A DNA stretch of 64,000 nucleotides from Chlorokybus atmophyticus (lineage: Eukaryota; Plantae; Mesostigma and Chlorokybus algae), in the NCBI GenBank assembly GCA_009103225.1, contig RHPI01001819.1, positions 1 to 64,000 on the forward strand, read 5' to 3'. The translations under genes were made by a program, and so were the position numbers. Positions 1 through 52,790 of this stretch are shown here, piece after piece. Numbering within the stretch: position 1 is the stretch's first letter; each line of letters opens with the position of its first letter. A model generated the notes under the pieces. The model ran no database searches. It had not been told where the DNA came from and saw nothing but the letters and a program-made list of their open reading frames with translations.

Positions 1-163
1 CTAACCCTAACCCTAACCCTAACCCTAACCCTAACCCTAACCCTAACCCTAACCCTAACCCTAACCCTAACCCTAACCCTAACCCTAACCCTAACCCTAA
101 CCCTAACCCTAACCCTAACCCTAACCCTAACCCTAACCCTAACCCTAACCCTAACCCTAACCC
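1..163. repeat. Terminal telomere array (CCCTAA)n, i.e. TTAGGG-type, left chromosome end
   Basis: About 27 perfect CCCTAA units from base 1, ending at ...ccctaaccc|caaattc. Confidence 0.98.
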
Positions 164-358: not shown

Positions 359-370
359 CTAACCCTAACC
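359..370. repeat. Short internal telomere seed (CTAACC)2
   Basis: ctaaccctaacc directly abuts cacaccatgcgg, the point where the homologous copy (rc of ~12740) continues with unrelated sequence. Confidence 0.65.
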
Positions 371-2446
371 CACACCATGCGGAGGGGGATGCGGCAGGGC
401 TCACAAAGAATGTTACGACTTCTCGTGCCATGGTATTGGTGCCGGGCTTAGCGCCAAGTTAGCTGCCCGCTAATCGCTCACGACTATCTAGAGGAATGGC
501 GCCACTAGGACAAAAAGATGCACGACGCTGTGCAACAGTATCCACTGTAAACGCTGAGTACTGGCATGGTGCACAGGAGTGGCATTACTGCAGCTTCTGA
601 GATTCTCGCCGCAAACTGAAGCTGGATGTTTCCTGCGCATTCTGCCACAACATCCCGAAGATTGACTTAGAGCATCACAACGCAGGCAATCACGTGACTT
701 GAATGCTCAGAGTGCCACAAAATCAACCATCAGATGGTTCAGCAAGCTTTTGGCGACCCTCGTACTACGAGTAGTATACTAGTAGTATAACCCTGCTGAT
801 CCACGCCGTTGGCTCAACAACTACTGTAAAGCACAGCTGCACCGTTGTCAGTGCCTTTGTGCTCGGTGGCGGGAAGCGCATACCTCACAAGAGTCTTCCG
901 GCATGCCTTTGCTTTTTGTTCCCACTAATCAGCTCCCAAACGGTGTGGACAATACGGAGCCTTTCTATAATCACTTGTGTGTGACCTGGAAAACCTCTAC
1001 TGAAACAGTGCTAGTATTAGTCATGGCCTTAACGACCGTGTGCTCGATCAACGTCCAGGTAATAACTTGGTTTTAACACATCATATCACATATGTTACAT
1101 AAAGTCGCATGGGCACTGTCCAGAGTCCACGAGTTATGCAATCCATTGTAGTGTTTGCTTAAGTCTCATAAGTGCTTTTCAATGACTACGACTTGTTTAT
1201 AGCATATCTGCCTTCTTGCGGTCTATGAGACTGTTATAGGATGCACTGCCTAGTGCGGCCTATCAGACCGGTATTATGAGATTCGGATGTTGCCTACAAT
1301 GCAGGTCAAGAGATGACGCTGCGGGCAGGGTAGTGCTGTGGGCATAAATGAGTAACCAGCCAGCTCGATGTGAGATAGGCCAATTTAATAATGTGGCCTC
1401 GTCCCCTACCGGCGTTGTCTCCTTAAAGCCACTCGACACCAAGTACCCCGGCTTGCTGAGCAGAGTGAAGATACCACGAGGTTATGTGCTGACGATTGTG
1501 GTGGTGACAATCGCTGCTACCGCCGCCATCCCCAAGTAGGGAAGGCAGAAAGAGCAGAACAGGATGCATATGACAATGTGTGCATGGTGGACTCACTCGA
1601 TGGCTAAAACCGAGAACGTAAATTAATGGAGTGCGGCATCACTAGCAAATCTCCATTCTGGTGGTTGTGGCATTTGCATGCGTTTAACCTTTACCGCAAC
1701 TTGCTAGATGACACGATGCACATGTTGCTAGAGGGGCTTTGCAAGAGTTTTGTGCATAATACGCTTGGCGTAGACAGTTAAAAGCATGTTCAAGACATTG
1801 CCAAGGTGGAGCGCATGCTGTCCCAGATACGCATTTCAAGCCCATGGACGTGAAAACAAAACATTATAAGAGGCATTAGCGAGCACCTGGCTTTGTTCAA
1901 GACCCACGACTTGCAAATATTCGTGCATTTGCTTTGCCATACGCCGTGTCCGATTTGGCAGACGAAGCAACCAGAGACGTCAGCTTGTGCTTCACTTGAT
2001 TATCCGCATCTTCTTCCACAACTCTCGCCTACATGCACACCCGTTGACGTAAAAGGACTATGCATGGTCCGTGTCTTTGGACCAAAATATTTCCCTGCTA
2101 AAGAAAATTAGCGTATTATGTCTGTTCCGACTGTCATTGACAGCCGGACCACACACGGACCGAAGTTCACATGAATGAAGTCATGTTTTTTTCGGGGCCG
2201 CACCATGGCATGGCGCGCAAAGAGTACGTAGTCGAGGCAACTTGGCACATCTTACCTGTTGACCGCATGTTGTGGGGTAAGTTGCAAGTCAACATACTCA
2301 AACTCAAGGATGTTTGGTGCACGCATGAATCAGTCATGCTGCTGTGTAGCATACGGATGCAAGTTGCTCGTTACGATGAGATTATGCACTGCAAGCACAA
2401 TATCCGCAACACGCAAGTTAGTGCCAATGATTGCATTCCCAAATAG
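371..2446 (+). pseudogene. Degenerate CACTA (Tnp2/Transposase_21-DUF4218-like) transposase
   Basis: Fragments resemble CACTA motifs: DPRNITLLIHAVG (cf. DPRNxRLxLxxDG, intact in copy B), PNGVDNTEPFYNHL (cf. PxNDIDVYLQPL), FKTHDLQIFVHLL (cf. LKSHDCHVLMQ), WHILP...WCTHESVM (cf. H-L...W-M-Y-P-F-E). Many stops and frameshifts. Confidence 0.6.
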
Positions 2447-4004
2447 TTGGCAACAGCATCACGAAGGGATAATTGTAGTAATAATGCATATTGTATAGGG
2501 GAACAAATTAATGCCTACACATGTCGGGCAGTGCCGGCATGCACGGAAAGGCAAAGTAAACCTGGCGTGGTGTTAAGTGCAGCATAAGGTAAGGAGTTTA
2601 CGCCATTACTCACACCGCTAGCACATGCAACATTTATGGGCATTCCTCGGGTCTTATCTTGATATAGTCGTGTTAACGTTTTCACATGTGCAATTGCCGC
2701 TTTTGCTCCAAATCGCCTATTGGTGACTCATTTCCATTTTTTACATCAATGCTTGCTAAAGGTGTTGACTGTCCCCGCTAGGCGTTGTCTTTTAACTCAT
2801 TGATGCCAGCAGCATTAAAAGTTGGTATGCAGGTGAGATATTATCAACATGCCTTGGAGCGGGACCGACCAATTATAATCACAATCAAGCATGCAGAGCG
2901 CACGATGCGCGAGGGAGAAGTGTGTGCCGGGCTTATCAACACGAGAAAAGGTTTGTACACATATTGTTTTGTGATGCGCTGCGTCACACCTTTCGCTTAG
3001 CTTACTCGCGTGACTTAAATGCGCGTTTTACAGACGTTTATAATTACCACCATTGTAACGCTTACAATGTTGTAAAAGTTGTCAACATTTATAAATGGAA
3101 GTCGTCAACTGCGGTGTTGATCAAGTGTCCTTGTTGACACTTGATCAACACCGCACATGACGACTTCGATGTATGGATTAAACGTATTAGTACGTTACTA
3201 ACGCAGCTATTGCTTACTGAGTACAATATCAATTGCGCTTCAAGCTTGAAACCACTTGATTCAAGCTTGTTATTTACTACAAGCACCTGTGTAACTGCAC
3301 GAAGAAGGGGAATTGTAAATGATGTTTCATGCTAAGCGCGGGGTCGGATATGATAACACAAGATCAACATGGTTAAGCATGTATACATCATGTGCTTATT
3401 ATGCACATAAGGCAACTTCACTTCCACTGCGATAATCACATAATCATAAGATGACATTAATGTAACCATGTATCTATTGCGGTTTTTAGGACAATGCGAG
3501 GAGAGGTTCAGTAAAGGAGATTTGCTCATCTTTGGTTGATATACATGTATGAGATATGCTAGTGCATGCCACGCTGATTAAGTGGTATTCACACACAAGT
3601 ATGATAGTGGGAATAAAGTTTCTGAGTTAAGTAACTCACATTTCATACCCCATGTGCATGCGTGACATGCTATTTGGCGTGCTAAGGTGGTGCCGTGCAA
3701 CCAGTAACAGCTGCAGACGATGCACTGTTAATGCCACATGCTAGGGTTCTTTTATCTTGCACATGTACAGCCTCAAGTATCTTGCACTTGACATACATTG
3801 TCAATACCACATGCACACCCTCATGCACAACCTCCAGTGTCATGCACATGAACAGCATGACCAAACGCAAATGCACAGCCTATTTCTACTTGCTGGAGCT
3901 CACAAGTCGCAAAAGAGAAGCTGCGGAGTACCACGAACGGGTAATCCATGACCTAGTTTAATGTTTCTAGCGGTGATTAAGCAGTATGCTTGCAGATTGC
4001 CATG

Positions 4005-4322
4005 TTAGTCAGAGTGAACCGAGAGCAGCGCGGCAGGCTGACTGTTTGCCTGGCGGAGTGCAACAAAGCAGAAGACGAGGTAAGCGTGTGTATGCTGATG
4101 GGCTAGTCCTCTGGCAGCACGCCACTCTTACAGCATTACCAAATGCAGGTGGTCACTCTCAAAGCGACCATCAAGCGCATGCGCGTGCACGGCGAGGCGC
4201 TGACGTTCAAGCTGAAGGACGAAGTAGCCGCTGTACTGTCAGCGAGCGAGGCAGCGGATGAAGATGACTCCGGCGTTGAAGCAGAAGACTCGTCGGAGGA
4301 GGAACAGGAGGAGGGAGTTTGA
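4005..4322 (+). CDS. Two exons of an unknown acidic-tailed protein, probably the second (TnpA-like) CACTA gene
   Basis: ...CLAECNKAEDE|GTAAGC intron 4080-4148 ...ATGCAG|VVTLKATIKRMRVHGEALTFKLKDE...EEEQEEGV*. The phase-0 splice keeps the frame. The 5' start is not defined. Confidence 0.4.
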
Positions 4323-4869
4323 GGAGGAGTTCTGAGGCAGGCACCACAGGTTGACAAGCTGCGCATGAGTCCGACAGCTAGACTCAATGTTATAGGGTAG
4401 TTTCATGCGCAAGTCGGCTGCTCAGTTGCAAGTGGACATACTCTCACCACTGCCCGTACATTGTATATATTGTGGGCTTTTGGGTGCAAGACCAAACAAT
4501 CAGTCCAAGGATTGTACAAGCTGCATGGCATGTTAGTGTTGGCTTACGGCAAGAATTGCCAACTTTTGTTAAACGGCAAGGGTCACATATTAACAGCAGT
4601 GTAACGGCAAAGAAACTGCCGGCTATTGCTGTCAGCTGTCCGTAACTACCGGCTAACGGCCGTCTGTGCACATCGACCAAAGGGTAACTGGTTGACAACT
4701 CTTGGCCGGTTAGTGCCACTGACAACCACTTTCGGCCCGCGGCCGTCTGCGTCAGTCCACTTAAGCCAACGGCAAACCCAACAGTCTAAAAGTAATATTT
4801 CAGGCAGCGACAGGCAGGCTCAGGCACCAGTCAGTCCCTCAGTCCTTGGTCAGTCACCGTGTAAAATTT

Positions 4870-5330
4870 GCGACGAACGTGCGTTAAAAGCTGTTTTCTC
4901 CACATCCTCGGGCGCGATGCAGATATGGTGATAACCTCCAGCAAGATCAAGTGTTGTGAAGTACTGCGCACCTTGCATTTGCTCCAGCAACTCGTCGATA
5001 CATGGGAGTGGAAAGCAATTCCTCTTCATGATGTTGTTGAGAGCTCGGTAGTCGACGCACATGTGCAAGCTCCCGTTCTTCTTTCGTACAAACAAAATAA
5101 GTGCACTATAAGGGAACTTACTAGGCCTGATGTAGCCTCTTTTCAGCAAGTCCGCCACCTGCCTCTTGGCCTCTTCCAGCTCTAAAGGTGACAACTTGTA
5201 TACGGGTCGATACAGTAGCTTGTGCACGCCCGCAATCAGCTCCACACGGTGGTCTACGCTCTGTGAAGGTGGTAGGCCAGATGGAAGTCCGTCCACCATG
5301 ATATCTTGGTATGCTTTAACAAGTTTACAC
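4870..5330 (-). pseudogene. pol: Reverse transcriptase N-terminal fragment (Gypsy 1)
   Basis: YRPVYKLSPLELEEAKRQV...YIRPSKFPYSALILFVRKKNGSLHMCVDYRALN...LDLAGGYHHI...KTAFN; cut before the YxDD motif. Confidence 0.92.
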
Positions 5331-6401
5331 ACCTCGGGGTCTATCGTAGCCGTCTTAACATCGTCACTCAGCTCCGGTGCTGACGTTTCAGTGTTTTCGC
5401 GCACCATGCACAACCATGCAGCCTTTGCCTTCCGTGAAGACAAAAGCTTCCTCAATTGCACATAAGAGATCTGGTCAATTGTCGTACCACCTGATTGTGC
5501 GTGCCGCAATTCGATGACGGCCGACGCAGCTATGGCAAAATCTCTCTTGCTTTCCACAAAGCGATCTTCCTCTTCAACAGGGCATGCGCGCATACTTTGA
5601 ATAGACTCTCCACCGTTTTGATGGTGAGCACGCGCTTCCTCCAATTAATGGATGGATTATGTTGCCATAGCCACGGTAGTCCCAAAATCCCGTCAAACCC
5701 GTTTCGTAGGGTGATGCAGCAAAATCGCATGTTCTCCTTCGTCTTCCTAATGCGAACGCACAACTCTTTAGTCATTAATGAGCGCCATTACCTCCAGAGG
5801 GTGACTCTCCATTAGCGAGCTCCACTTCACCTCCTCGTAATGATAAAAGCCAACCGTAACGCCACGCAATATCAATACTCATAAAGTTGCTGTTGGCACC
5901 GCTTTCAATCATAAGCTTGCACTCTCTCCATTGTCATTGGTCATTGCACATGTGTGCTCGAAGCCCGCAGTACTTTATTGTCTCCTCTTTGCATAACTCA
6001 CCATTGGCGCGTTCATAGCAATCTCCTCTTGCTTCATTGATGGAATGTCACAGCATCCGTCCGTACATGAGGCTCCTTCCTATCCCCAGCAGTAGCCTCC
6101 TCACCTACTGGGGGAAGTCGTGTTCCTGCTCCACGCCCTTTTGTTTCATGGTGTTGACGCGACGATCACGGCGAGGGTTGCCATCCGGTGTTGGCCTTTG
6201 CGTGCTTCATTTGGGGCATCCGTACGCCAATTGCTCAGTCGACCCACACGCATAACACTTGCGCACAACTTTACCTCTTTCACCACGTCCGCCGTGCTCC
6301 GCCTCACTTCCATGCGTGTGTATGGCACCCACCTCCATTGGTGCAGGCCCAAAGTCAGCTCCACCTCCATTGGCAAGCGCTAAACTTGGTTCTCCTCATC
6401 T

Positions 6402-7133
6402 CTATGCATGTTGAAAGCCTCCCCGGGGCTGATCACCATGCCTTTGCCTCCAGTCAGTGTTTTTTTCGGTAGACTTGAGATACAACGCGTCGTGACGCTC
6501 CGCGATGCGCATAGCCTCCGCGAGTGTCTTCGGGTCCCGTAGCTCCACGTCTTTACGCCCCAAAGGTTTTAAACCACGTGTATACCTGTCCAGCGGCTCC
6601 TCCTCGGTCATATTGGGTATGGACATCACCAATCGCTGAAACGCAGCCGTGGACGCCATCACCGACCCCATTTGCACAAGGGCTGCAAGTTTGTCACATG
6701 CGGCCTTCATGCTCTCAACAGGAACAAATAGAAGCCTGACCTCGATTGCCAACTCTTCCATGGCGGTCAATGGTAGCGCCAACCCATTTGCGACACGCGT
6801 ACATTGATGCCTCCACCACACAAGTGCTGGACCTTCAAGCAATGTCGCGGCAACCTCCACATGTAAGTGTGTGGGTACCTCCGTCAGCTTCAACCATGAT
6901 GACACTTGGAAGAGCCACTCGTCCACAACATCTCCATCACGTTGACCCTTGAATGGCTTTGGCTTTGGCACCTTCACATGCACGCGCGAGCTTGACGCCG
7001 TGGGAACTTGTGCATGCGCCATTGCACGCTCGTATGCCTCGCATTGTGCTTGTGCCGCCGCTTGCATGTGATGAAGCTCTTCTCGCAGTGCCAAGACTGC
7101 ATTTTGAAGCTCCTCAACACGGACATCCTCCAT
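6402..7133 (-). CDS. gag: Retrotransposon Gag (Gypsy 1)
   Basis: KPKPFKGQRD...EWLFQV...LLEGPALVWW...RYTRGLK...TLAEAMRIAE, typical Gypsy capsid. Confidence 0.88.
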   Translation of the reverse strand: MEDVRVEELQNAVLALREELHHMQAAAQAQCEAYERAMAHAQVPTASSSRVHVKVPKPKPFKGQRDGDVVDEWLFQVSSWLKLTEVPTHLHVEVAATLLEGPALVWWRHQCTRVANGLALPLTAMEELAIEVRLLFVPVESMKAACDKLAALVQMGSVMASTAAFQRLVMSIPNMTEEEPLDRYTRGLKPLGRKDVELRDPKTLAEAMRIAERHDALYLKSTEKNTDWRQRHGDQPRGGFQHA

Positions 7134-7216
7134 CTTTACCTCCTTTCCTTCACAAGTAGAGTGTAAACGCAGCCTCGTCCCTTAAAACGCTACCACACTC
7201 GCACCTCCGCGACCGT

Positions 7217-7229
7217 GGCTTCGATACCA
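7217..7229 (-). promoter_or_regulatory. Primer-binding site TGGTATCGAAGCC (initiator tRNA-Met type)
   Basis: Lies 2 nt after the LTR end ...GTCACA (7232) on the minus strand. Confidence 0.75.
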
Positions 7230-7231
7230 GT

Positions 7232-7822
7232 TGTGACGGTCGTGCCTTGTCACCTGTGAGTTGGTCCAATCAACAACCCTATCACCAAGACACGGTATTC
7301 ACACCGGAACCTTACCCCTTAAGCCAAGCACACACGCGCGCCCCGCCACTCGCGTACGCACGCGCATGCGCTCCAAGCTACACCCCGACTTGTGTAGCGC
7401 CTTGGATCGTCACACAAGCAAGCACACACAAGTGAACACATGCTAGCAACTCCTGTTAACCACCACCAAGCTTGCACACCAGAAACTAGGGAGCTAAAGG
7501 TTGTAATGCAAATTTTAAAATGTCATTTTTATACCTACCAGTCTGCACATGCTACTGACTAGACAATTCTAGCGCAACTCCTGTTAACCACCACCAAGCT
7601 TGCACACCAGAAACTAGGGAGCTAAAGGTTGTAATGCAAATTTTAAAATGTCATTTTTATACCTACCAGTCTGCACATGCTACCGATTATTCTAGCGCTA
7701 GAAGGAACTAGAAGCTAAGATACTCTTGCAGAATCTTGTAGTACACTTCTAGAACTTTCCAACGCACCAAATATCTCCTCATTTGCTGCTCATATGGTCA
7801 AGTTATACTACTTGGCGCCAGG
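7232..7822 (-). repeat. 5' LTR of Gypsy 1, truncated by a telomere repeat, with an internal 128-bp tandem duplication
   Basis: Homologous to 33118-33575; near-identical duplicated block starting at 7446 and at 7574. Confidence 0.8.
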
Positions 7823-7823
7823 A

Positions 7824-7847
7824 TTAGGGTTAGGGTTAGGGTTAGGG
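7824..7847. repeat. Interstitial telomeric sequence (TTAGGG)4, polarity opposite to the terminal array
   Basis: ggcgccagga-ttagggttagggttagggttaggg-ccgc. Confidence 0.95.
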
Positions 7848-8080
7848 CCGCAATTGGAAGAGCCAAATTGCTAGGTAAACCAAGCGGATGAATTCTTATG
7901 TGTGGTCCTCGCAGTTATCAACGAAGTACACGGCTATTAATTTAGTGCTGCAAGTTACTTTCAGTGCACATATGTCGTGCTTGTGTTTTGGCTTGCGTAT
8001 GTATTCAGTTGGATCAGTTGAAGTAAGTGTTGACGTAATGGTTGTGTAGCCAGCCGTGTGTTAAACTCAAGCGACCCAAT

Positions 8081-8460
8081 CACAGGGGTTTTTGCGCGCG
8101 GATCAATTTGAGGCAGCGCGCAGACCACGTCTGGTAAGCTATGGCGTACCATTGCTGCGACTGGTCCGGCGTGATCGGACCACTGGTGGTCCGGCCCTGG
8201 ACCGACCAAACCAGGGCTAGTCGCGTGCCCCGCGGCCTGGAGACCGGTACAGCAATGGTTAGCACGCGGCCTGTGCAGTAGGACCAAGGCGAATCGTATC
8301 ATACGTTGCGGCCTATAAGCCAAGGCAGCACTGGTACATCACAGATGTACCGCATAGACCAATTATAAATCAAAGCAGGACCATGCTGCACTGATGGCAT
8401 GGTCCCGGATAAGCACTCAACAACTGTCAAGCACTAACTCATGAATACCATGGACCAGAG
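8081..8460 (+). mobile_element. CACAG terminus and GGACC/GGTCC-rich subterminal arm of a CACTA-like element (probable 5' end of copy B)
   Basis: CACAGGGGTTTTTGCGCGCGG...; the same terminal ~120 bp occurs at 33600 (+) and 47102 (-). Confidence 0.65.
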
Positions 8461-9177
8461 TTGGAGCGGCACATTGGCAGCTACCTAGATCAGACTATTG
8501 GGTACCTAGCCTGGGCACCATCAAAATTGCTGTAATATATGGCACGTATAGTACTGACACCACTCTCGCAGATCGATGTTAACAATAATGGACATAATGT
8601 CCGATGGTGACACGCCCTTGAGAGAAATGGGTGTCAACACCAAAGAGCATGCCGGCTATTAATTGGCCACGACTTGCGCGTAGTGGTATCACCACCATAC
8701 ATCAACATGTACAGAATTGCGATTGTAATGTTGATGCTTACACGCTACGCAAGCATCGCACGACAACAGCGATATATAAGTGTTGATTTATTGTAACCAG
8801 CAAAAAGAGTTAACAATCATGCAATAATAAAATTGATGGAAGACCGTTGCCTCTTAGGCTAGACACATACATTACGGTGTGGCAACAACGGCGCCCTTGG
8901 GACGAAAGCATATAACACACCTCACCTGATTCTTTGCTTTCAAAGTTACGTGTGCCAATGCTAAACGAGTAGCAGGTAGTGGGCTGCATGGTCCCCTGTC
9001 CATTTGCTAGAGTTACAGGCTTGCGCTGCAATTTTGGCGGCGGCGGCAGCGGTGGCAACAACTTTTGGGGCAGCTAGCTTCGTGGGTACTACTCATGCAC
9101 CCAATATGGCTGACCGAAAAGCAGTTGATATTGCTAAAAGACTTCACAAGTCTATTGGACTCAAGCTACCTGCAATC

Positions 9178-12100
9178 ATCTTGTAATTATGTGATTATCG
9201 CAATGGATGTGAAGTTGCCTTACGTGCATAATAAGCACATCATATATACATGCATTACCATGTTGATGTTGTGTTATTATATCCGACCCCGCGCTTAGCA
9301 TGAAACATCATTTGCAATTCCCCTTTTTCTTGCAGTTACACAGCTGCTTGTAGTAAATAACAAGCTTGAATCAAGTGGTTTAAAGCTTAAAGCGCAGCTG
9401 ATATTGTACTCAGAAGGTAATAGTTGCGTTTGCAGCATAATAATATGTTTAATTCATACATCGAAGTCGTCAAGTGCGGTGTTGATCAAGTGTCAACAAG
9501 GACACTTCAATGTATAAATGTTGACAACTTTTACAACATTGTAAGCGTTACAATGGTGGTGATTATAAAAGTATGAAAAACGCGCATTTAAGTCACGCGA
9601 GTAAGCTAAGCGAAAGGTGTGACGCAGCGCATCACAAAACAATATGTGTACCAACCCTTTGTCGTGTTGATAAGCCCGGCACACACTTCTCCCTCGCGCT
9701 CGCCGTGCGCTCTGCATGCTTGATTGTGATTGAAAATGGTCGGTCCCGCTTCAAGGCATGTTGCTAATATTTCACCTGCATACCAACTTTTAGCGCTGCT
9801 GGCATCAGTTAGTTAAAGGACGACGCCTAGCAGGGACAGTCAACACCTTTAGCAAGCATTGATGTAATAGTTGGAATGAGTCACCAATAGGCGATTTGGA
9901 GCAAAAGCGGCAATTGCACATGTGAAAACGTTAACACGACTATCTTAAGACAAGACCCGAGGAATGCCCAAAAATGTTGCATGTGCTAGCGGTGTGAGTA
10001 ATGGCGTGAACTCCTTACCTTATACTGCACTTAGCCCCACGATAGCTCTTTTGATTGCTCTACTTTGCCTTTCCGTGTATGCCTGCACTGACCTACAGGT
10101 GTAGTCATCAAAATCTGTCTCCTACGACATGCATTATTACTACAATTATCCCTTCATGGTGCTGTTGCTGCATATTTCAAAATGCAATCATTGGCACTAA
10201 CTTGTGTGTTGCCGATGTTGTGCTTGCAGAGCATAATCTCATTTTAACGAGCAACTTGCATCCGCATGCTACACATCAGCATGACTGCTTCGTGCGTGCA
10301 CCAAACATCCTTGAATTTGAGTATGTTGACTTGCAACTTACCCCACAACATGCAGTCAACAAGTAAGAAGTGCCAAGTTGCCTCGATTACGTACTCTTTG
10401 CGCGCCATGCCATGGTGCGACCCTGATACAAATATGACTTCATTCATGTAAACTTCGGACCGTGTATGGTCCGGCTGTCAATGACGGTCGGAACAGACAT
10501 AGTACGCAAATTTTATTTGGCAAGGAAATATTCTGGTCCAAAGATACGGACCATTCATAGTCCTTTTACGTCAATCTTTTGATTGCTCTACTTTGCCTTT
10601 CCGTGCATGCCTGCACTGACCTACAGGTGTAATCATAAAAATCTGTCTCCTACGACATACATTATTACTACAATTATCCCTTCGTGATGCTGTTGCTGCA
10701 TACTTAAGAATGCAATCATTGGCACTAACTTGCGTGTTGCGGATGTTGTGCTTGCAGAGCATAATCTCATCTTAACGAGCAACTTGCATCCGCATGCTAC
10801 ACATCAGCATGACTGCTTCGTGCGTGCACCAAACATCCTTGAGTTTGAGTATGTTGACTTGCAACTTACCCCACAACATGCGGTCAACAGGTAAGATGTG
10901 CCAAGTTGCCTCGACTACGTACTCTTTGCGCGCCTGCCATGGTACGGCCCCGAAAAAAACATGACTTCATTCATATGAACTTTGGACCGTGTGTGGTCCG
11001 GCTGTCAATGACAGTCGGAACAGACATAATACGCTGATTTTATTTAGCAAGGAAATATTTTGGCCCAAAGACACGGACCAATCACAGTCTTTTTACGTCA
11101 ATCGGTGTGCATGTAAGGCAAGAGTTGTGGGAGAAGATGCAGATAATCAAGTGAAGCACAAGCTGACGTCTCTGGTTGCTTCGTCTAATAAATCGGACAC
11201 TGCGTATGGCAAAGCAAATGCACGAATATTTGCAAGTCGTGGGTCTTGAACAAAGCCAAGTGCTTGCTAATGCCTCTTGTTTTCTTTTCACGTCAATGGG
11301 CGTGAAATGCGTATCTGGAACAGCATGCGCTCCACCTTGGCAATGTCTTGAACATGCTTTTAACTGTCTACGCCAAGCGTACTATGCACAAAACTCTTGC
11401 AAAGCCCCTCTAGCAACATGTGCATCGTGTCATCCAGCAAGTTGCGGTAAAGGTTAAACGCATGCAAATGCCACAACCGCCAAAATGGAGATTTGCTGGT
11501 GATGCCGCACTCCATTAATTTACGTTTTCGGTTTCAGCCGTTGAGTGAGTCCACCATGCACACATTGTCATACGCATCCTGTTCTGCTCTCTCTGCCTTC
11601 TCTACTTGGGGATGGCGGCGGTAGCAGCGATTGTCACCACCAAAGTCGTCAGCACGTAACCTCGTGGTATCTTCACTCTGCTCAGCAAGCCGGGGTACTT
11701 GGTGTCGAGTGGCTTTAAGGAGACAACGCCGGTAGGGGACGAGGCCACATTATTAAATTGGCCTATCTCACATCGAGCTGGCTGGTTACTCATTTATGCC
11801 CACAGCACTACCCTGCCCGCAGCGTCATCTCTTGACCTGCATTGTAGGCAACATCCGCATCTCACAATACCGGTCTGATAGGCCGCACTGAGCAGTGCAG
11901 CCTATAACAGTCTCATGGACCGCAAGAAGGCGGATATGCTATAAACAAGTCGTAGTCATTGAAAAGCACTTATGAGACTTAAGCAAACACTACAATGGAT
12001 TGCATAACTCGTGGACTCTGGACCATGCGACTTTAGGTAACATATGTGATATGATGTGTTAAAACCAAGTTATTACCTGGTCGTCGATCGAGCACACGGC

Positions 12101-13388
12101 TGTTAAAGCTATGACCAATAGTGGCACTGTTTCAGGTCACACACAAGTGGTTATAGAAAAGGCTCTATACTGTCCACACCGTTTGGGAGCTGATCAGTGG
12201 GAACAAAAAGCAAAGGCATGCCGGAAGACTCTTGTGAGGTACTGCGCTTCAAGGAAGTTCCCGCCACCGAGCACAAAGGCATTGACAACGGTGCAGCTGT
12301 GCTTTACAGTAGTTGTTGAGCCAACGGCGTGGATCAGCAGGGTTATATTACGAGGGTCGCCACAAGCTTGCTGAACCATCTGATGGTTGGTTTCGTGGCA
12401 CTCTGAGCATTCAAGTCACGTGATTGCCTGCGTTGTGATGCTCAAAGTCAATCTTCGGGATGTTGTGGCAGAATGTGCAGGAAACATCCAGCTTCAGTTT
12501 GCGGCGAGGGTCTCAGAAGCTGCAGTAATGCCACTTCTTTGCACCATGCCAGTACTCAGCGTTTGCAGTGGATACTGTTCCACAGGGTCGTGCATCTTTT
12601 CGTCTTAATGGCGCCATTCCTCTAGATAGTCGTGAGCGATTAGCGGGCAGCTAACTTGGCGCTAAGCCAGGCACCAATACCATGGCACGAGAAGTGGTAA
12701 CATTCTTTGCGAGCCCTGCCGCATCCCCCTCCGCATGGTGTGAAGGCGATTAATCATGTTGCTTGGTCTCGCCCGTGCCCCGATCATTGTCATCTTCATT
12801 GAGTGTGGGATAAGGTGCATCAAACAAGTACTTGCATGTGGGGACAGTCAGGCGCTGAGGAACAGGCATGCCAAGCGCGGCCAACAGTTTATCCACGGCG
12901 GCAATGTTTGTCGGCAATTCCTCCACAACAAGGCTTTGCAACATTAGGTCGCCTATGAGGCTGACGATGTCATCCCGCAATTGCTCCTGTTCGCAAAGAA
13001 CCTCCAAGGCCAGCTTGACCACAGAGTTTATCTGGCTAAAGATGAGCTTCATGATTTCGTTAACAAGAGCAATCTGGACGCCGGAATTCTCAAGGGCTGT
13101 CAGGATCTTTAGGCCGATATCCAACCACTTTTCAGTGGTACACTCCGATGAAGGTTGGCTGGGCTCCAGAGGTTGACTAGGGGAATATATGGTGCCCACT
13201 TGCTTGCGGCAACTGCCGGGTTAAATGCACGCACCCTTGCAACTTCTTCGTCCACCATGTATAATACCAGCTTGTTTAGCCAGCAAGCTATCAACATTAA
13301 TCCACATCACCACGCTGTGAAGGAACACAAGCAAGATACACGCGCACCTGGCTGTGTTCTAGTCCGGACTGGGCAGTGTCAATAAGAT
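9178..13388 (-). mobile_element. CACTA-like element copy B, inverted block carrying a transposase pseudogene
   Basis: Reverse complement of 371-3450 plus an extra N-terminal part (ORF 12750-13199, LPTNIAAVDKLLAALG resembling CACTA LPxSxYEAKKLLxxLG); internal ~528-bp tandem duplication 10047-11101. Confidence 0.75.
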
Positions 13389-13637
13389 CAACATAACCAT
13401 GTAACTATTGCGGTTCTGAGGACAATGCGAGGAGAGGTTAAGTAAAGGAGATTTGCTCATCTTTGGTTAATATACATGTATGAGGTATGCTAGTGCATCC
13501 CACGCTATTTAGGTGGTATTCACACACAAGTATGATAGCGGGAATAAAGTTTCTGAGTTAAGAACTCACATTTCATACCCCATGTGTGCATGCGTGACAT
13601 GCTTTTTGGCGTGCTAAGATGGTGCCGTTCAACCAGT
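13389..13637 (+). repeat. Direct-orientation continuation of copy B
   Basis: Matches ~3452-3706 in the same orientation and starts where the inverted block's homology ends. Confidence 0.85.
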
Positions 13638-14099
13638 ACAAGTTCATCCAAAGTTATCACCTGTGAGACGCAGCAAACGAGCGCATAAGACCCTTTAGTG
13701 CTGCCGCGATGATGAAGGCTATGTGCTTAGTGTGCTGGACGTGCACCCCGACGCCCAATCACCCAACAAATCAGGCCGTCCACCACCATAGCAACTTACA
13801 TGCACATGGACTTGGGTTGATGTGATTCTTACAAACCCGGTGCAATCGGCAGTAGCGATGCATCAATGAGCAAGCACATGCATAACAACATGCTCATAGG
13901 CATAAGTAGCGTCTAAGCAACAGCTTTTGAAACAGCATGTTAGTGAATAGCACATATGTACAGCATATGCACCAAGTCAAATACGGCTAGCATATGAGAG
14001 AAAGGGCTCTGCCATTACTCTACATCAATGTCATCATGTTGACGTAATTCAGCTGCTGTCGGCAAAATAAGCAAAATTTCGTGAGGCTACAACATGTTC

Positions 14100-16981
14100 T
14101 GACCTCCTACTTTCTGCACTGGTTGCATCCGACGTCTACGCCGCAAACTAGTTCTTTGATATGGTCATTTTGCACCACTTCGCCTAGATGCTTCATATTG
14201 CCACCATTGAAAGTGTTACAGAAAATTGAAGAGTCCTCGAAGATAAGCATAGCTGTCTTTGTCTTCAAGTACAAGGACACCACATGGCAGTTTGCAATCA
14301 AAACGTTGCAGAACACACCTAACAAGTGCTGGAGCTGGTTCGTGTCTCTGAAGCGGTCGTCTCCTCGACATGTGGGTCATTTTGACCATATACCTCCTTC
14401 CATGTGTCTCTGTACACATACTCTTCATGATAGCAAGGCAAGAGAAGAGAGGTTTCCGCAACTGGCGAGATTATGAAATCATATTGAGAAGATAGACTAA
14501 ACTCGCCAGACGAATAAGCCTCCTCAGTCTGTTCGCGGCTCACAGTGTACGACTCCGTTTCATTCCACACGGATGGTGGATGCATATGCTGCGCTTCACG
14601 TGTGAATGTGCGCACGTTGGTTAACTGCGAAAAGTCTCCCCCACTCAATTTTTCGCGCTGGTCATTCCATCCGTACACGTTTGTTGTAGTAGAGTAGTTG
14701 CTGGGTGCACCATCAAACGCCTTTGCAACAACTGTTGTAGCACTCTGCACCTGTTGTTGATTGTACAAGTAACTTCAGCTGCACAGTTACTGCAGCAATA
14801 CTAATGACTTACCGTTTGATACGTATCTTTCGCACTTCTGAATCCGTCATCTGCCGTGCTATTGACAACGACACGATGTGCTTCAGAGTAGATTGTTGTG
14901 ACAATCTTGCCAGCTGAAGTCTGCGGCACACAGTATACACCTCAAGTAATCAAACCTGCATTACCAGCATCAAGTGCCTACCCCCCCAACCCCCACCTGT
15001 AAAATAACATTCACAAGCACGCATGCAGGCACCCATCCATCCATCCAAACGAGGATGCAGACGCACCCGCAAGAAGCCCGCAAATGAAGCTTGTTGCAGG
15101 TATTCTCTCGTGGTGATGGCCCCTGACCCAGAGGGTGAACCATAATAGTAGGTTTCGTCGTCTCTGCTTTCCAGCTGGTACGTTGCGAAATGCGCATAGC
15201 GCAATCTCCCTGTCGTGCGCGACGCACCGCGATCACGCCACACATGCAGGTTGGCATCAATCTGGTACGCGCATGAATAGGCAGCGTCTGCAAGGAAGGT
15301 CTCCGTGGCGACGAAAGCAATATGATGGCGCTTGCCATCGGTGAGGGTGCCAACAAACGGCGTGATATCAACCTCAACGCCATACACGACCATCGCGGGG
15401 TTGTCGAACCTAACGTCATCACTCTCGCCCCATGCCACACCTGCCACGCGCCCATCAAGCAGTACGGCTATAGAAAAGGGAGCGAAGGAACCATATGCTG
15501 CCCCCGCATACACTGCCTTGACCTCCAGCACAGCACTCAGAGTGTTGACGGGAGCTTTGAAGGCCACTGTAGGTGACGGCAGTGAGGCATTTGCCACGCA
15601 CAAGCGCGGGTGGAGGGCTTGATGGACGTTACCACTTTTCCACCCTGATATGGGGATGACTAGGTCGGCAACGTCTGGCTTTGGAGTGTCGCCAGCAAGG
15701 TAGTAATGGTACGTCGCCGTGAGCTTGATGTCATAGGGAAAGACCGCACTAGTGCCATCTGGTATATCCGCATACATGCGCAGCTGCCCTGGAAGCTGCA
15801 GCACCGCTGCATACTAGACCACACAAAACCAATTGCAGCTTGCTAGCATGTAATAAAGCAGCACGTCAAAAGCCCTTGAGGCGTGCATACCTTGGTGACG
15901 ACCGCATGGAAGTCATAATAATGGTTTGGTGTGAGCGGATCGTGGTCGATGGGTTTCTGAATAAAGGGAAGGTCGTATGGCTGAAAGTCGCCGGGCCCCG
16001 TCTGAATCTGCTGAGTCGGGGCGGCATCAACGAAGGTGAAAATATCCACACCTGGAGGCGAGGTAGTGTGAGAGGATTGATGGAAAGCTATTTGGGTCAA
16101 TGTCTGACTGATGTTTCGCCTATAAAATGAAACTTGCAAGACACACATGGCAGCCATATGCAGGCGAGCACACACCGCGCAGCCATATGCCAACGGTCAC
16201 AGGAAGAGAGCCGACGTCGGTGCGCGTGTAGTTGACGCTGGCGGTGAGAGTTGTAAGCCCGCACCAGGTGGCTTTCTTGCCATGCTGCACTGCCGTGCAT
16301 GACATCGCCGCTGGCGGTGGCAGATAGGCAACCACACACGACCGCTGCGCATCTCCAACCGCAGCAAGCTGGAAGGAGCATTGTGCCAGCGTGATATTCA
16401 CCGAGCAAGAGCTGCTCGACGCTGGTGGATACGCAAGTGGACGCCGATCAAGGTACCACTCCTGCAGACGAGTTTGTTGTTACAGAACACACGATGCTTG
16501 TGATGTTGCTACTGTAGCAGAAGCTCAAAGATTGGTGAAAACTTCAGATAACGCTGCAGTGTGGTTAGCTTCTTCACACAAGCGTGTTGTAGTGTGTGAG
16601 GCAGCAACTTGACCCTGAATGGCGAGATGACAAGCTGAAACATTATATTATATGCACGGTCGACGCGTACATGCATGTAAGAGAACCGGTATCGTGCACA
16701 TGGAGTCGGAAGCGGCAGCCTGGGGACACAGGCTACTTACGGCTCGTGCCTTGCATGTGATGAGCGACATGCCGCACGCGCGTGCGGGCACGAAGCAAGC
16801 GGCGGCATGACGCAAGACCTCTACCTCCTCAGGTCAATCCAAGCGAGAGAGCAAAGCTGGCCTCATCACTCCACAACCATCCGCTTTCAACCGCGTGCCT
16901 TACCTTGGTGGTGACGGTTGCCGCCGCCGCTGTCGCCGACAAACCCACCAGCAGCAGCAGCAGCAGCAGCAGCTTCGCCAT
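14100..16981 (-). CDS. Secreted peptide-N4-(N-acetyl-beta-glucosaminyl)asparagine amidase A-like (PNGase A) gene, multi-exon
   Basis: Exon 1 16904-16981 encodes the signal peptide MAKLLLLLLLLVGLSATAAAATVTTK|GTAAG. Exon 2 from 16461 encodes ...YLPPP...LTASV...VGIWLRG. Later exons encode VEVDITPFVGTLTDGKRHHI, YQIDANLHVWRD...TTGRL and TSAGKIVTT, all resembling PNGase A. The 3' end is uncertain. Confidence 0.75.
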
Positions 16982-19900: not shown

Positions 19901-22900
19901 AATGCAATTGTCAATGCGTGTGGCGAATGTGGCGAAATCGGCAGGTTATTTTGCCACGCATTGCTAGGCTATGTTAATGTAGCGTAGCAAATGCCCACCA
20001 CCGACACCGTGCGCAAGGCCGCAGCGCGCGACCTAGGAGTCTGGAGGCAGGAAGCGGCTGAAAGAAATGGACATGTAAATGCTACGACATTTGCAGTCCT
20101 AATGCGTTTGATAACGATGAATTGTTGTGGTTATCACACGACTTACGAAGCTGGGCAACGTGTCTTCGAGTCTCACGCGTCCACTTTTACAAAAAATCTG
20201 AGCTTGCAGCACGATTGTAGCAAATGTTTATCACAAGCACATGTTGCTCATCACGTCGCTTGCTCGAGAACAAATGTTTTGTTTGCAGTGAGTCTCAGCC
20301 GTGGATGAGTGTCCTCATTAAGGCTGTGCTAATAGCATAGGCTTGGCAGGACAGTGCAGAATGCACATCAAACGGCTGAGAGTGCGCGCTCGGCCACGTA
20401 GGTATAGGCGACACGTGGACGGCGTTGCGCAGCCCGGCGCCGTCACTGAGCTGCGGCAGTAGCTAACAGCAGCGGCGGCGGCGGCGGCGGCGCTAAGTGA
20501 GTCGGTTGTGGCGCGCACTTGAGCAAGCACAATGGCGCTTACAGCGCCAAAGAGAACAACCACAAGTGCTGCTGCAGTGGCAGCAGCACTAGTCTTGCCA
20601 TGCACGGCAAGGTTGCCAGCTGCTCGGCCACTGGCTGTTGTCAAAAAGGCCAATACAGATGGCAACGGCGGCACCACGCCAAGCGCAAGGCCTGATGTCA
20701 AGACAGCGCATAAGAGGTGCGCACAGCGTGCTCCCCTCGCGTGCGTCCTCTGACCCATCAAGAGGGGGTAGAAGCAGATAGATTCGTCAGCCTATCAGCT
20801 GGCGAGCTTCAATGCGTAAATGTCTTGCTGAATAAGCGCCTTGTGTTGCAGCCCCAACCCTTCTGCGCGCCGAGCTTAATTGGGAAATGTTTTGCAATTG
20901 CACGTTAACGTTGATCAATTAATGTAATTACATTTACATATAGCAGGTACTCATTGATGCTAAGTGATGACGGGTAACTCATCATCCATTGTCAAATACA
21001 CTTTGCAATGGTAAAACAACGCATGTGTATATGACTGCATATTGATATGCAGCCTACGAAAACAATACAATGGTGCATGACACATGCTATGTTACAAAGT
21101 ACACAATGTATTTAAACGAGATTATATAACATATATACATAAGTCATACAAATGTGTTCAGCAAAAGGCCATGTCCAAGACACGATAAACGCATAAGTTG
21201 AGTATGTGAACAAGTGTAGAGAATATGCAATGCTGTGCATGTGACTCACCATTGCACGTCCCATGCAACATACACTAGCACAATCACAGTCCACCATGGC
21301 AGCAACTTATTTCACCAGTGTGGCACACAGCAGTTAAATGTGTTAGAATTAACATGACTGTGAAATTATCATCACAGAATATTCATGACTATGAGCATAT
21401 GTTAATCGTGCAATTAGAATCAAGAGTGCGATTGAAAGCACCCATGTCGAATCAATACGTCGTACCCCTTGGAGTTGATATAAAACAAGATAAATGCCGC
21501 ATGCCTCATGACATACAAATTGCAATTCATGTGCAGCAATTCAGATAAACTTGTAAATGAGCCAACACGGCAATGTTTGCAACCAACTTGCCAGATCAAT
21601 TGGGACACATTTTATAACAAGAAAGATAGAAATTGGTTTAAAAACACGTAAACCTTAAGGATTTAAGCATACCTGCATCCTTAAATAGGTAAGCTTACTT
21701 AACATACTCATAGTTTTCGACAATGTATACCAACATAATAGAGTTGTTGTTTTCAACTTTGACCAATTCACATTTTTAAAACATCATGTTTCGTCCACGA
21801 ATTGCCCCCGTTTGATCGTGCAACACCCCACATGCTGTGCACGGTTGTGTATGTTGTGTACTTGTGCTAAGTTGTGCTGTCTCAGCATGTGTTTCTCTCT
21901 GTATTCAGTGACCGTCACTTGGTCCATAAATGATGCTTTGTGTGTGTACGCAGAATGATAGTGTATATGACATTTAAAGCGTTTATTGAAACACGCGTAG
22001 GCATGCCACATGCACACAGCAACACCACATCATTGCTATACAAGGTTGTACTTTTATACCACCGGGCTACACAACTATCACACTACTACCACCGCCCATC
22101 CCCGTTAGACATGTATAGGCATGAGGGGACGGTGGACAGCCTGCGGCATAGGCAAGCAATGTGTGACCAATAGCCACAAGCAACACCACCTGCGAAACGC
22201 ACAACCAGCAAGCTAGGTAGCTAGCAGCGGCAGCGAACAGGCCAAGTCAGCTTTAGCACCAGGCACAGCAGGCAGCAACAAGTACGATAGCAGTAGCGCG
22301 CTGGGCCCTCAGCAGCGCGTGAAGGCAGCAAGCAACCTCCGCTCCTCACCTACACAGGAGCGCACAGTGAGCCAGAAGCCGTTGGGCAACTGGACGTTGT
22401 GCCCATCCCATCTTTAAGGACTCCGGACTTTTAGGGTTAGGGCTCGCGAATCCCCCTTTGCTGCGTGCACAGTGCCAAACACAAAAGCATGCCGAGTGCC
22501 TTGCACATGACCTTGCACACTAGCTTAGTATGTTACTTGCATGCACTGCATCAGCATGGAATGTGAACAGACTTAGTTGACAAACACGCCAATACGGGTG
22601 ATGTTTAACAAAACACCAAGCTCTCAACAAGTTAGTATCAGCATACAAGTAACTGCATGCATGTTGACATGTTGTGGTTGTCACCTACACAACGGCCATT
22701 GGTCAACAGCCCAATTGGATTGCGCTATCCTTGGCGAGGCAGCTGCAGCAGCAGACCCCACGGACTCTTCCTCCTCCTCCGCCCACATCACCGCCTCCAC
22801 CCATAACCGCGTCGCACACCCCGCTGCGACTGCGTCGTTAGAATTGGCGCCCATTGGCGCGCAGCATGCATGCGCACAGCATTAGCGTCGCTGTGCCTGG

Positions 22901-32928: not shown

Positions 32929-33575
32929 TGTAACAGTCGAGGCCAAGTTTCATGATGTTTAAACCTTCTTTGGTCCATTTATCGAGCACCACGTTTTCAT
33001 GACTTGTGGCAGATATCGGCGAGTTATGAGTCTGCCACGGATATCGACCGGGGCCGGAAGGTGCCAGAAAACGGAGGGCCAGTCGCGAAGGGCTCGACCA
33101 GATGTTTAAAAGTGCCTGGCGCCAAGTAGTATAACTTGACCATATGAGCACCTAATCAGGAGATCTTTGGTGCATAAGAAAGGTCTAGAAGTATACTACA
33201 AGGTGCGGCAATAACATCTTAGTATCTAGTTTTTTGTAGCACGGGAATCGTCTAGACAGTAGCATGTGCAGACTGGTAGGTATAAAAGCGATATTCTACA
33301 ATGTGCAATACAACATTAAGCTCCTTTGTTGGTTGTGTGCCAGCTTGGTGGTGGTTAGCAGGGGTTGCTAGCATGTGTCCACTGGTGTGTGCTTGCTTGT
33401 GTGACGATCCAAGACGCTACACAAGTTGGTGTGTAGCTTTGAGCGCGTACGCGAGTGGCGGGGCGCGCGTGTGTGCTTGGCAGAGGGGGCAAGGTTCCGG
33501 TGTGAATAGCGTGCCTTTGTGAGAGGGTTGTTGATGAGACCAACTTACAGGTGACAAGGCACAAGCACCGCCACA
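32929..33575 (+). repeat. LTR related to Gypsy 1 (solo or orphan)
   Basis: 33118-33575 aligns to rc of 7232-7822 and ends ...CCACA. The TG start at 32929 is a guess. No matching TSD was found. Confidence 0.72.
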
Positions 33576-33599
33576 ACTAGTTAGATAGGGTAGATTAAC

Positions 33600-33990
33600 C
33601 ACAGGGCTTTTTACGCGCGGACCAGTCGTAGGCGGCCCGCGGACCACGTCTGTTACGTTGTAGCGTACCAGTGTCGCAACTGGTCCGGCGTGAGCGGACC
33701 ACTGGTGGTCCGGTCCCGGAGCCGGACGGCATGGTCCAAGCGATGGGACCAGGGCTGGTCGTGCGCCCGGCGGCTTGCGCACTAGTGCAGCACACGGTCC
33801 ATTCAGCAGAACCAGGGTTGGTCAATTTCGCGCCCCCTGCAGCCTGCACACCAGCGGCAACATTGGTACGGACAGGTACAGCCGTTGTGACCAAGTCAAG
33901 TCGTACGTCGACGTCGTCTTGTGACCAGACATTGTACGCACCGCGCGTCCTGCGTAGCAATGGTGTGCAGTGACCGTATAGCAATTGTTG
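33600..33990 (+). mobile_element. CACAG terminus with GGACC-rich arm (CACTA-like family)
   Basis: CACAGGGCTTTTTACGCGCGGACC..., homologous to 8081 and 47102; the other end was not found. Confidence 0.6.
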
Positions 33991-35848: not shown

Positions 35849-36749
35849 NNNNNNNNNNNNNNNNNNNNNNNNNNNNNNNNNNNNNNNNNNNNNNNNNNNN
35901 NNNNNNNNNNNNNNNNNNNNNNNNNNNNNNNNNNNNNNNNNNNNNNNNNNNNNNNNNNNNNNNNNNNNNNNNNNNNNNNNNNNNNNNNNNNNNNNNNNNN
36001 NNNNNNNNNNNNNNNNNNNNNNNNNNNNNNNNNNNNNNNNNNNNNNNNNNNNNNNNNNNNNNNNNNNNNNNNNNNNNNNNNNNNNNNNNNNNNNNNNNNN
36101 NNNNNNNNNNNNNNNNNNNNNNNNNNNNNNNNNNNNNNNNNNNNNNNNNNNNNNNNNNNNNNNNNNNNNNNNNNNNNNNNNNNNNNNNNNNNNNNNNNNN
36201 NNNNNNNNNNNNNNNNNNNNNNNNNNNNNNNNNNNNNNNNNNNNNNNNNNNNNNNNNNNNNNNNNNNNNNNNNNNNNNNNNNNNNNNNNNNNNNNNNNNN
36301 NNNNNNNNNNNNNNNNNNNNNNNNNNNNNNNNNNNNNNNNNNNNNNNNNNNNNNNNNNNNNNNNNNNNNNNNNNNNNNNNNNNNNNNNNNNNNNNNNNNN
36401 NNNNNNNNNNNNNNNNNNNNNNNNNNNNNNNNNNNNNNNNNNNNNNNNNNNNNNNNNNNNNNNNNNNNNNNNNNNNNNNNNNNNNNNNNNNNNNNNNNNN
36501 NNNNNNNNNNNNNNNNNNNNNNNNNNNNNNNNNNNNNNNNNNNNNNNNNNNNNNNNNNNNNNNNNNNNNNNNNNNNNNNNNNNNNNNNNNNNNNNNNNNN
36601 NNNNNNNNNNNNNNNNNNNNNNNNNNNNNNNNNNNNNNNNNNNNNNNNNNNNNNNNNNNNNNNNNNNNNNNNNNNNNNNNNNNNNNNNNNNNNNNNNNNN
36701 NNNNNNNNNNNNNNNNNNNNNNNNNNNNNNNNNNNNNNNNNNNNNNNNN
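35849..36749. other. Assembly gap (N)
   Basis: Run of N. Confidence 1.
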
Positions 36750-37033
36750 GGGGGCCGAGATATGCGCGCGCATATGCACATGTGTACTTGCGCATGCACG
36801 TGCACGTGCAAGTACACATGCGTTGTGGATGAAACACGTACGTAACTATGTGCACACGTACTCATGTACCAAGATGTACGTACACCCACTGGTCGCAATT
36901 GGGCTCATAGACCGCGCTGTCCAGTGCGGCCAATGAGCCAGTCGCTGTAGGCTGGCTCATAGGCTGCACTGTCTAATGCGGCCTATAAGCCAGATCTGCG
37001 TGTACACTAAGCATGCAAACAGGTGCCACTAGA

Positions 37034-51928: not shown

Positions 51929-52790
51929 AGTTTACAACAATGTACCAACAGTCGCCAAGCGGCTTGGCGACTGTTGGTTGGGGATAATTGGTGATGAACA
52001 GTCGGCGGTTGTTACTTTGATAGGTTCATATCACGTATGCACATAGACTTTACAACACTGGTAAATGGACGGTAAATAGACAGCCGCAGCTCGGAGGTTG
52101 TCAACACGCCAGTATAGTTCAGGTTGAGAGTTGTTCATGAGTTGGTAACCTTGCTAAGGGCTGTGATTATAATAATGCCTAGTACTGAGGCGTGATGTGT
52201 AGCAATCAAAGCTTGTGTATTTGGTCGAGCTGTCGATGAAGCTGTGGTCTCATAAGGTGTGAGTGGCTGTGCATAAGATTACATAAATTGATTAGGCAAT
52301 ATAAATTATATATTGCTATTAATTTGTTATAATGCACTACTTCGCTATAGGTTCAATGTGTACTGCAGTCTACTATATGTTATTTAACTACTTATACATA
52401 TAGCATTATCACGCATAAAAACTCATTAACATGATTATGTATAAGTGTACATGCACATCAACAATATGATACTTGTACATGCAATTTCAATGTCTGAATT
52501 AAATGCACATGCCGCAAACTGCAACGGCAATACATGGACAGTCCCTTACTCTACAAGGCAAGGACCTTAGTAGGCCTACATCTTATCACTATAAATTGTT
52601 GACAGCCGGGCTGTCAAGTTGACAGCCGGGCTGTCAAGTTGACAGCCGCCGACCCTTTGCGGCTGTCCATTTGTCGGTGAGTAATTTCAACAGTCGGTGC
52701 GGCTTGTTGTTTACTATGTTAACATGATGCATCATTATATAATCATGTAATCAATCAATCATTCCATAAGGTCATCGTATGTACTACCTA
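51240..52790 (+). mobile_element. Second, inverted, diverged copy of the 44825-47102 element
   Basis: 51555-51655 matches rc of 46578-46685; 51750-52700 matches rc of 45250-46455, including the tRNA-like module. Confidence 0.75.

Follow-up and report, generated by a model that had tools for sequence, protein, structure and literature searches.

Short telomere tracts at transposon breakpoints near a chromosome end of Chlorokybus atmophyticus are consistent with serial breakage and healing

The stretch of DNA analyzed here is a 64-kb window of contig RHPI01001819.1 from the streptophyte alga Chlorokybus atmophyticus, which opens with a terminal telomere array and carries, further inward, two very short interstitial tracts of telomere repeats that bracket a truncated repeat copy (copy A) and a fragment of a Ty3/Gypsy retrotransposon. 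The telomere motif of this species has been reported as CCCTAA (PMC8287931). The window holds two copies each of the repeat (copies A and B) and of the long terminal repeat (LTR) of the retrotransposon, and in both cases the tract stands where homology to the second copy ends. The tracts, their outward polarity and their coincidence with the homology breakpoints are real. This chromosome end would be explained by serial, mostly local breaks and the extension of their 3′ ends by telomerase, and we assign this explanation a probability of about 50%; telomerase as the agent, the order of the events and an origin in cis rather than in trans are what we infer from the pattern. An earlier note on this DNA had proposed that a broken fragment or mini-chromosome was healed at both ends and later fused to the chromosome. 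The healing part of that interpretation is sound, while the mini-chromosome is unnecessary, since a sequence of known events needs no acentric replicon.

At the left junction, the tract reads CTAACCCTAACCC (GGGTTAGGGTTAG on the minus strand), 13 nt comprising 2.2 perfect units, a word of which no occurrence is expected by chance (100 shuffles of the window). Homology between copy A and the inverted copy B begins at position 371 in A and 12742 in B, as determined by BLAST, with the two copies 92% identical along 2.2 kb and 88% identical along another 1.4 kb. At this breakpoint A reads ...CTAACCCACACCATGCGG and B reads ...CCTTCACACCATGCGG, with no telomere repeat in B; read toward the chromosome end, B continues as ...CCGCATGGTGTG-AAGGCGATTAAT, whereas A continues as ...CCGCATGGTGTG-GGTTAGGGTTAG. 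The tract and copy A share a single base (371), a final G in register with the added repeats. The left tract thus cuts copy A at a point at which B continues, as the earlier note had stated, and the CCCTAA repeats it placed at the left end of the segment are present, but they amount to 13 nt and are interstitial rather than the terminus of a molecule, as a 195-bp wedge of other sequence and (CCCTAA)27 lie distal to them.

The body of copy A is followed by a 245-bp segment, Z (3463-3706), which recurs in inverted orientation as Z′ (13394-13638, 93% identity) 650 bp before the body of B, and Z lacks the last 62 bp present in Z′. This layout would fit an element with long terminal inverted repeats of which each copy has kept one arm. 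The inverted Z/Z′ pair implies that the repeat unit extends ~900 bp past 12742; on this layout, copy A would have lost ~900 bp or more. The junction between the body of A and Z overlaps the continuation of B by ~9 bp (AAGATGA), which suggests an internal-deletion derivative, and copy B carries an internal tandem duplication of 528 bp (10047-10576 and 10575-11103, 93% identical) that is not present in A. The earlier note had called both copies CACTA transposons; the truncation of A at the tract is supported, while the family is CACTA-like at best, with its CACTA identity unproven. The evidence for CACTA consists of one pentamer, the CACTAAAGGG end at 13700, and the label is weak because this pentamer lies 62 bp beyond the A/B/Z homology and no transposase of the Tnp2/EnSpm type, nor any open-reading frame (ORF) longer than 150 amino acids, was found in A or B. 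If B spans 8081-13700, its 3-bp flanks differ (AAT vs CTG). The 149-codon frame in the extension of B (ORF149) had no Pfam match and no homologs in a word-based search, and an atlas search returned only weak HEAT/ARM-like features; on these grounds it was rejected both as a transposase and as a host gene.

At the right junction, four perfect TTAGGG units occupy 7824-7847, where shuffles of the window predict 0.01 occurrences. LTR homology to the 33-kb copy (33115-33581, 81-85% identity) stops at 7822 opposite 33115, and the tract begins one base past this point: the 7-kb copy reads ...GGCGCCAGG-A-(TTAGGG)4, whereas the 33-kb copy reads ...GGCGCCAGG-CACTTTTAAAC and contains no telomere repeat. 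This bears out the claim that (TTAGGG)4 cuts the Gypsy LTR where its 33-kb homolog continues, with one orphan base between. At 33575 the 33-kb LTR terminates in ...CCGCCACA, for which the sole good inverted match upstream is TGTGGCAG, located at 33005. From the terminal inverted repeat TGTGGCAG...CCGCCACA, the full LTR would be ~571 bp long, so that the 7-kb copy is short by ~110 bp of U3; judged from this repeat, a start at 33005 and a loss of ~110 bp are probable. The 7-kb LTR also holds an internal tandem duplication of 128 bp (7446-7575 and 7574-7698, 95% identical) that is not in the 33-kb copy. No further copies of the LTR were found in the window, and an exact-pattern scan of metagenomes gave no match.

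The sequence cut at the right junction is a Ty3/Gypsy fragment (4886-7822), and its portion from 7232 to 7822 belongs to the minus strand, where it forms the 5′ LTR of the element, and not to the plus strand. A primer-binding site (PBS), CAACTGGTATCGAAGC, lies at 7233-7218 and was parsed as CA-AC-TGGTATCGAAGC, with the PBS itself at 7229-7218; a near-identical TGGTATCGGAGC PBS precedes the gag of another Gypsy element at 60.8 kb. Downstream follow, in the order expected for Ty3/Gypsy, Gag (7133-6405; Ty3_capsid and Retrotrans_gag, 4e-9 in Pfam), a protease-like stretch (5775-5533) called by motif and position only, and the N-terminal part of reverse transcriptase (RT; 5644-4886, RVT_1, 4.5e-9 in Pfam), for which homology to other Gypsy elements ends near 4886 in tblastx. 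A pair of LTRs with TG...CA ends and a target-site duplication is not seen, as a single 5′ LTR is left and its TG end is missing.

Both tracts lie within 0-1 nt of a homology breakpoint, at a chance expectation of 0-0.01 per window, and each is a short, near-perfect hexamer array at a single break site. At both, repeats of outward polarity abut non-telomeric DNA at the very point at which the homolog continues, as in de novo telomere addition, and these junction sequences lend good support to a telomerase-type process having added repeats to breaks within transposons. In a scan of the window, telomere-type words outside the terminal array and the two short tracts amounted to one, (TTAGGG)2 at 22431-22442, which sits in TTTAGGGTTAGGGCT, away from detected repeat boundaries, and may be a telo-box-type motif. 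That such words occur away from repeat boundaries is what would be expected if the tracts were native motifs (telo-box-type words or transposon cargo) or chance matches with no link to breaks. This explanation is highly improbable given that the expected count is close to zero, that the tracts sit at breakpoints to within 0-1 nt and are absent from both homologs, and that no LTR-like direct repeats frame the right tract. The earlier note had itself named native telomere repeats in intact copies as grounds for abandoning its idea, and neither B nor the 33-kb LTR has telomere repeats at the corresponding point.

The outward polarity at both ends of the segment was borne out, and the question is what it means. 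Any break at the left end of a chromosome must be capped with CCCTAA, so the polarity of the left tract is uninformative; only that of the right tract was free to vary, and an outward match would arise by chance in one of two cases. Of the three telomere arrays at this end, only that at 1-163 is terminal, and neither 359-371 nor 7824-7847 marks a physical chromosome end. A third site of telomere addition is present at 164, where the G-strand runs ...TTTGGGG into TTAGGG, and since it lies outside the left cap, the events must have been serial. The register between broken end and added repeat is 3 nt at 164 and 1 nt at 371 (G-strand ...GGTGTG into GGTTAG) and is broken by the orphan A at 7823. 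Within the segment, two more truncation junctions, at 3706/3707 and ~4886, have no telomere repeats, which indicates that many separate events went into the patchwork seen here.

These observations bear directly on whether the segment was once a free molecule. The proposal of the earlier note can be put in two forms: 371-7822 would have been a stable mini-chromosome, or it would have been a transient acentric fragment produced by two breaks, with both 3′ ends extended by telomerase and then ligated to the wedge on the left and to the DNA from 7848 onward on the right. Such a two-ended molecule would account for outward G-strand extensions on both ends and for two tracts that are very short and then followed by foreign DNA, as if ligation had stopped the extension. 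It is nevertheless improbable, as it requires two simultaneous healings and two ligations, there is no evidence of a centromere or origin, the polarity is uninformative (forced on the left, one in two on the right), and the hints of an origin in cis described below oppose it. Telomerase-type healing of broken ends, with later joining of the inner one, is therefore the part of the earlier proposal that is supported, and the pattern gives no evidence that both caps stood on one free molecule or mini-chromosome. A related and similarly doubtful possibility is that 371-7822 was freed by two breaks in a shattering-type event, or existed briefly as extrachromosomal linear DNA, and that telomerase added 2-4 repeats to its 3′ ends before end-joining placed it between the wedge and 7848 onward. 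If so, short telomere tracts would mark the junctions of a complex rearrangement completed in a single step in a streptophyte alga.

The serial events that we favor would have begun with a break in the 5′ LTR of the Gypsy element, the end of which would have been extended by ~4 TTAGGG repeats and then end-joined to other DNA (7848 onward) with a loss of at least 110 bp, leaving a short interstitial telomeric sequence. The partner DNA would most likely have come from the same region of the chromosome. In an independent second step, a chromosome-end break in copy A would have received a telomere extension, of which 13 nt survive. Finally, a foreign 195-bp piece would have been joined to this 13-nt tract, and healing of its G-rich end (TTTGGGG) would have produced the present telomere. 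The outward-facing arrangement is best explained as a consequence of where the breaks fell and not of a former two-ended chromosome. Known events in sequence fit as well as a two-ended molecule does: a short telomerase-added tract at a break together with a deletion, or an end fusion, with terminal breakage and healing thereafter.

Two observations hint that the breaks were in cis. Copies A and B belong to one family and are inverted relative to each other, with 5.7 kb between them. In addition, each LTR copy has a Y repeat nearby, whose CACAGGG terminus is 25-260 bp away; with three Y copies in 64 kb, chance would produce this adjacency in roughly 4% of cases per LTR, had the 7-kb one been brought in from elsewhere. 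Y is a ~160-210 bp repeat whose copies are 79-81% identical and begin CACAGGG(C/G)T.TTTGCGCGCGG; this start is similar to the outer end of B, CACTAAAGGGTCTTATGCGCTCG, and Y may be a CACTA-like transposon terminus. As a tRNA or short interspersed element (SINE), a possible Ty3-type target, Y was rejected, since no tRNA was detected and its fold z-score was weak. The Y copies at 33.6 kb and 47.1 kb are inverted and could bound a 13.5-kb element enclosing a Gypsy that carries a DNA methyltransferase.

An origin in trans was also considered, in which a different chromosome or chromatid had 371-7822 as its healed right end, and the telomere of this end shortened to four repeats and fused to a telomere-less end at 7848, after which the dicentric broke in copy A and was healed. 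This sequence of fusion, bridge, breakage and healing is unlikely, yet it deserves weight in that it yields the exact polarity observed by known steps alone and is in keeping with the serial additions at this end and with a short right tract followed by unrelated DNA, for which 358/359 offers a like pattern. Against it, a telomere under maintenance in a telomerase-positive line would have had to shorten to 24 nt, both cis hints (the proximity of A and B and the LTR-Y adjacency) oppose it, and no head-to-head (TTAGGG)n(CCCTAA)m array was found, as no CCCTAA units occur from 7848 onward.

The pattern of a short perfect tract followed by unrelated DNA occurs twice (358/359 and 7847/7848), and the outward flanks were examined for a common origin. 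The wedge (164-358) has no ORF, no hammerhead and no second copy in the window, no source of the wedge or of 7848-8080 was found in the window, neither flank contains an RT ORF, and a search of 1-700 and 7700-8400 against Rfam and for hammerheads, with E up to 10, returned no match. Both flanks carry AGAGCCAA(G/A)TT at offsets of 12 and 11 nt (335-345 on the reverse complement and 7858-7868), a type of match seen in 0.13-0.17% of shuffles or random window pairs under a criterion picked post hoc. Homology of the two flanks was rejected, since they share only this 11-mer at a like offset and gapped alignments between them were not significant (p 0.06-0.85). The shared motif, rare in shuffles by that post hoc criterion, speaks in favor of the flanks being cDNA primed on a short G-strand end, derived either from a telomere-attaching retroelement, such as an endonuclease-lacking Penelope-like element, or from read-through on telomerase RNA, and rodent interstitial telomeric sequences flanked by telomerase-RNA sequence do exist (PMC2246262). 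The non-significant alignments, the lack of a hammerhead, Rfam match or RT ORF in either flank, and the lack of a poly(A)/poly(T) run at the junctions make this origin very unlikely.

We regard an assembly artefact, that is, a chimeric join or collapse at 7847/7848 or 358/359, as comparably remote. In its favor, the scaffold is below finished quality: it has an N gap, and at 51995-55303 a 1654-bp tandem duplication whose copies are 100% identical. The tracts, at 13 and 24 nt, are far below read length, so that reads must cross them; the flanks are unique sequence, and one mis-join cannot remove both tracts.

Several points nonetheless weigh against serial local healing as we have set it out. 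The right junction is out of register, with the orphan A between ...CCAGG and TTAGGG. The start of the LTR at 33005 is defined by an 8-nt terminal inverted repeat that matches at 7/8 positions and has no clean target-site duplication. Truncation was judged by comparing two copies per repeat and not by reference to a full-length consensus. An N gap at ~35.85-36.75 kb puts the scaffold below finished grade. The cis hints are soft in a repeat-dense subtelomere, and a history of fusion, bridge, breakage and healing, or a two-ended fragment, would leave an identical sequence. The features of the window on which these arguments draw are collected in Table 1.

Table 1. Features at the chromosome end of contig RHPI01001819.1 and the second copies used for comparison
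Feature	Positions	Strand	Remarks
Terminal telomere, (CCCTAA)27	1-163	+	Very start of scaffold
Unique 195-bp wedge	164-358	n/a	Between terminal telomere and 13-nt tract; single copy in window
Short telomere tract GGGTTAGGGTTAG, 2.2 repeats	359-371	-	Left-facing; adjoins truncated copy A with 1-nt overlap
Repeat copy A: body (371-3454) and inverted-repeat arm Z (3463-3706)	371-3706	+	5′-truncated at telomere tract
Unrelated 1.2-kb filler	3707-4885	+	Truncation junctions on both sides, neither with telomere repeats
Ty3/Gypsy internal part (PBS, Gag, protease-like, N-terminal RT)	4886-7231	-	Pfam, tblastx, PBS
5′ LTR of Gypsy fragment	7232-7822	-	~110 bp of 5′ (U3) end probably missing relative to 33-kb copy
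Interstitial (TTAGGG)4	7824-7847	+	Right-facing; linked to cut LTR via orphan A (7823)
Unique 233 bp joined to telomere tract	7848-8080	n/a	Single copy in window
Y repeat, first bases CACAGGGG	8081-8290	+	Other copies at 33599-33755 (+) and 47103-46943 (-)
Repeat copy B, inverted relative to A	9176-13700	-	88-92% identical to A; 5′ extension 12743-13700 with ORF149, Z′ and CACTAAAGGG end
Homologous LTR, solo or detached from its element	33005-33575	+	81-85% identical; reference for uncut state; 23 bp from a Y terminus

Other features of the window lie outside this argument. In the filler at 3707-4885, for which a fold-back or templated-filler test found no source within the window, an exon-like stretch at 3880-4325 (+) with GT..AG-type breaks and an acidic tail ...EEEQEEGV* may be part of a gene or the cargo of a transposon; it lies between truncated copy A and the truncated Gypsy RT. 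Moving inward past the repeat patchwork, the first gene of host-like character is an ORF at 14950-15804 (-), with a match to the C-terminal portion of PNGase A (PF12222, 1.5e-7). The N run (~35850-36750) adjoins the 3′ side of the Gypsy element carrying the DNA methyltransferase. A single base separates the two units of the 1654-bp tandem duplication (51995-53648 and 53650-55303, 100% identity), and the duplication could be very young, could represent two LTRs that lack an interior between them, or could have arisen in assembly.

In fungal transformants, linear DNAs are known to acquire telomeres at both of their ends, and these DNAs resemble the segment in having outward telomere repeats at both ends of a short DNA; here, in contrast, nothing shows that both tracts coexisted on a free molecule. 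Telomere-attaching retroelements are also known, such as the MoTeR elements of Magnaporthe. Athena and Coprina, which are endonuclease-lacking Penelope-like elements (PMC8557442), share with 164-358 the placement of non-telomeric DNA between telomere tracts of like polarity, whereas the wedge here lacks a hammerhead and an RT and occurs only once in the window. Breakage-fusion-bridge cycles with healing, as described by McClintock, and fusion-type interstitial sequences share with this locus a layout in which a fused former end turns internal and a later distal break is healed, so that outward-facing repeats bracket a segment; unlike these, the present locus has no head-to-head array and no recent inverted duplication, as A and B are only 88-92% identical.

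The closest parallels are chromosome healing and the short interstitial telomeric sequences of mammals. As in de novo telomere addition, repeats of the correct polarity are fused to non-telomeric DNA where the homolog continues, and at 371 and 164 the junctions are either G/T-rich or in register; the difference is that a working telomere now stands at 164 alone, and the other two tracts are interstitial and 13 and 24 nt long. In primates and rodents, interstitial telomeric sequences were inserted at double-strand breaks, about half of them with flanking deletions, some with filler and some inside repeats, and in-register microhomology was present at 67-80% of informative loci, depending on the species (PMC2246262). 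The mammalian sequences (PMC2246262, PMC7215372) likewise consist of short, perfect (TTAGGG)n at a break, with a polarity that shows which end was extended. The present case differs in that it comes from a streptophyte alga, in that the right junction has no visible in-register microhomology and in that at least 110 bp are missing.

The locus is thus a further example of known repair scars and, alone, gives no new mechanism. Its value lies in being a clean sequence-level record of telomerase, if our reading is correct, acting on breaks, both internal and terminal, in a streptophyte alga of an early-branching lineage, in which extended ends would still be joinable to other DNA, giving rise to short interstitial telomeric sequences like those of mammals.

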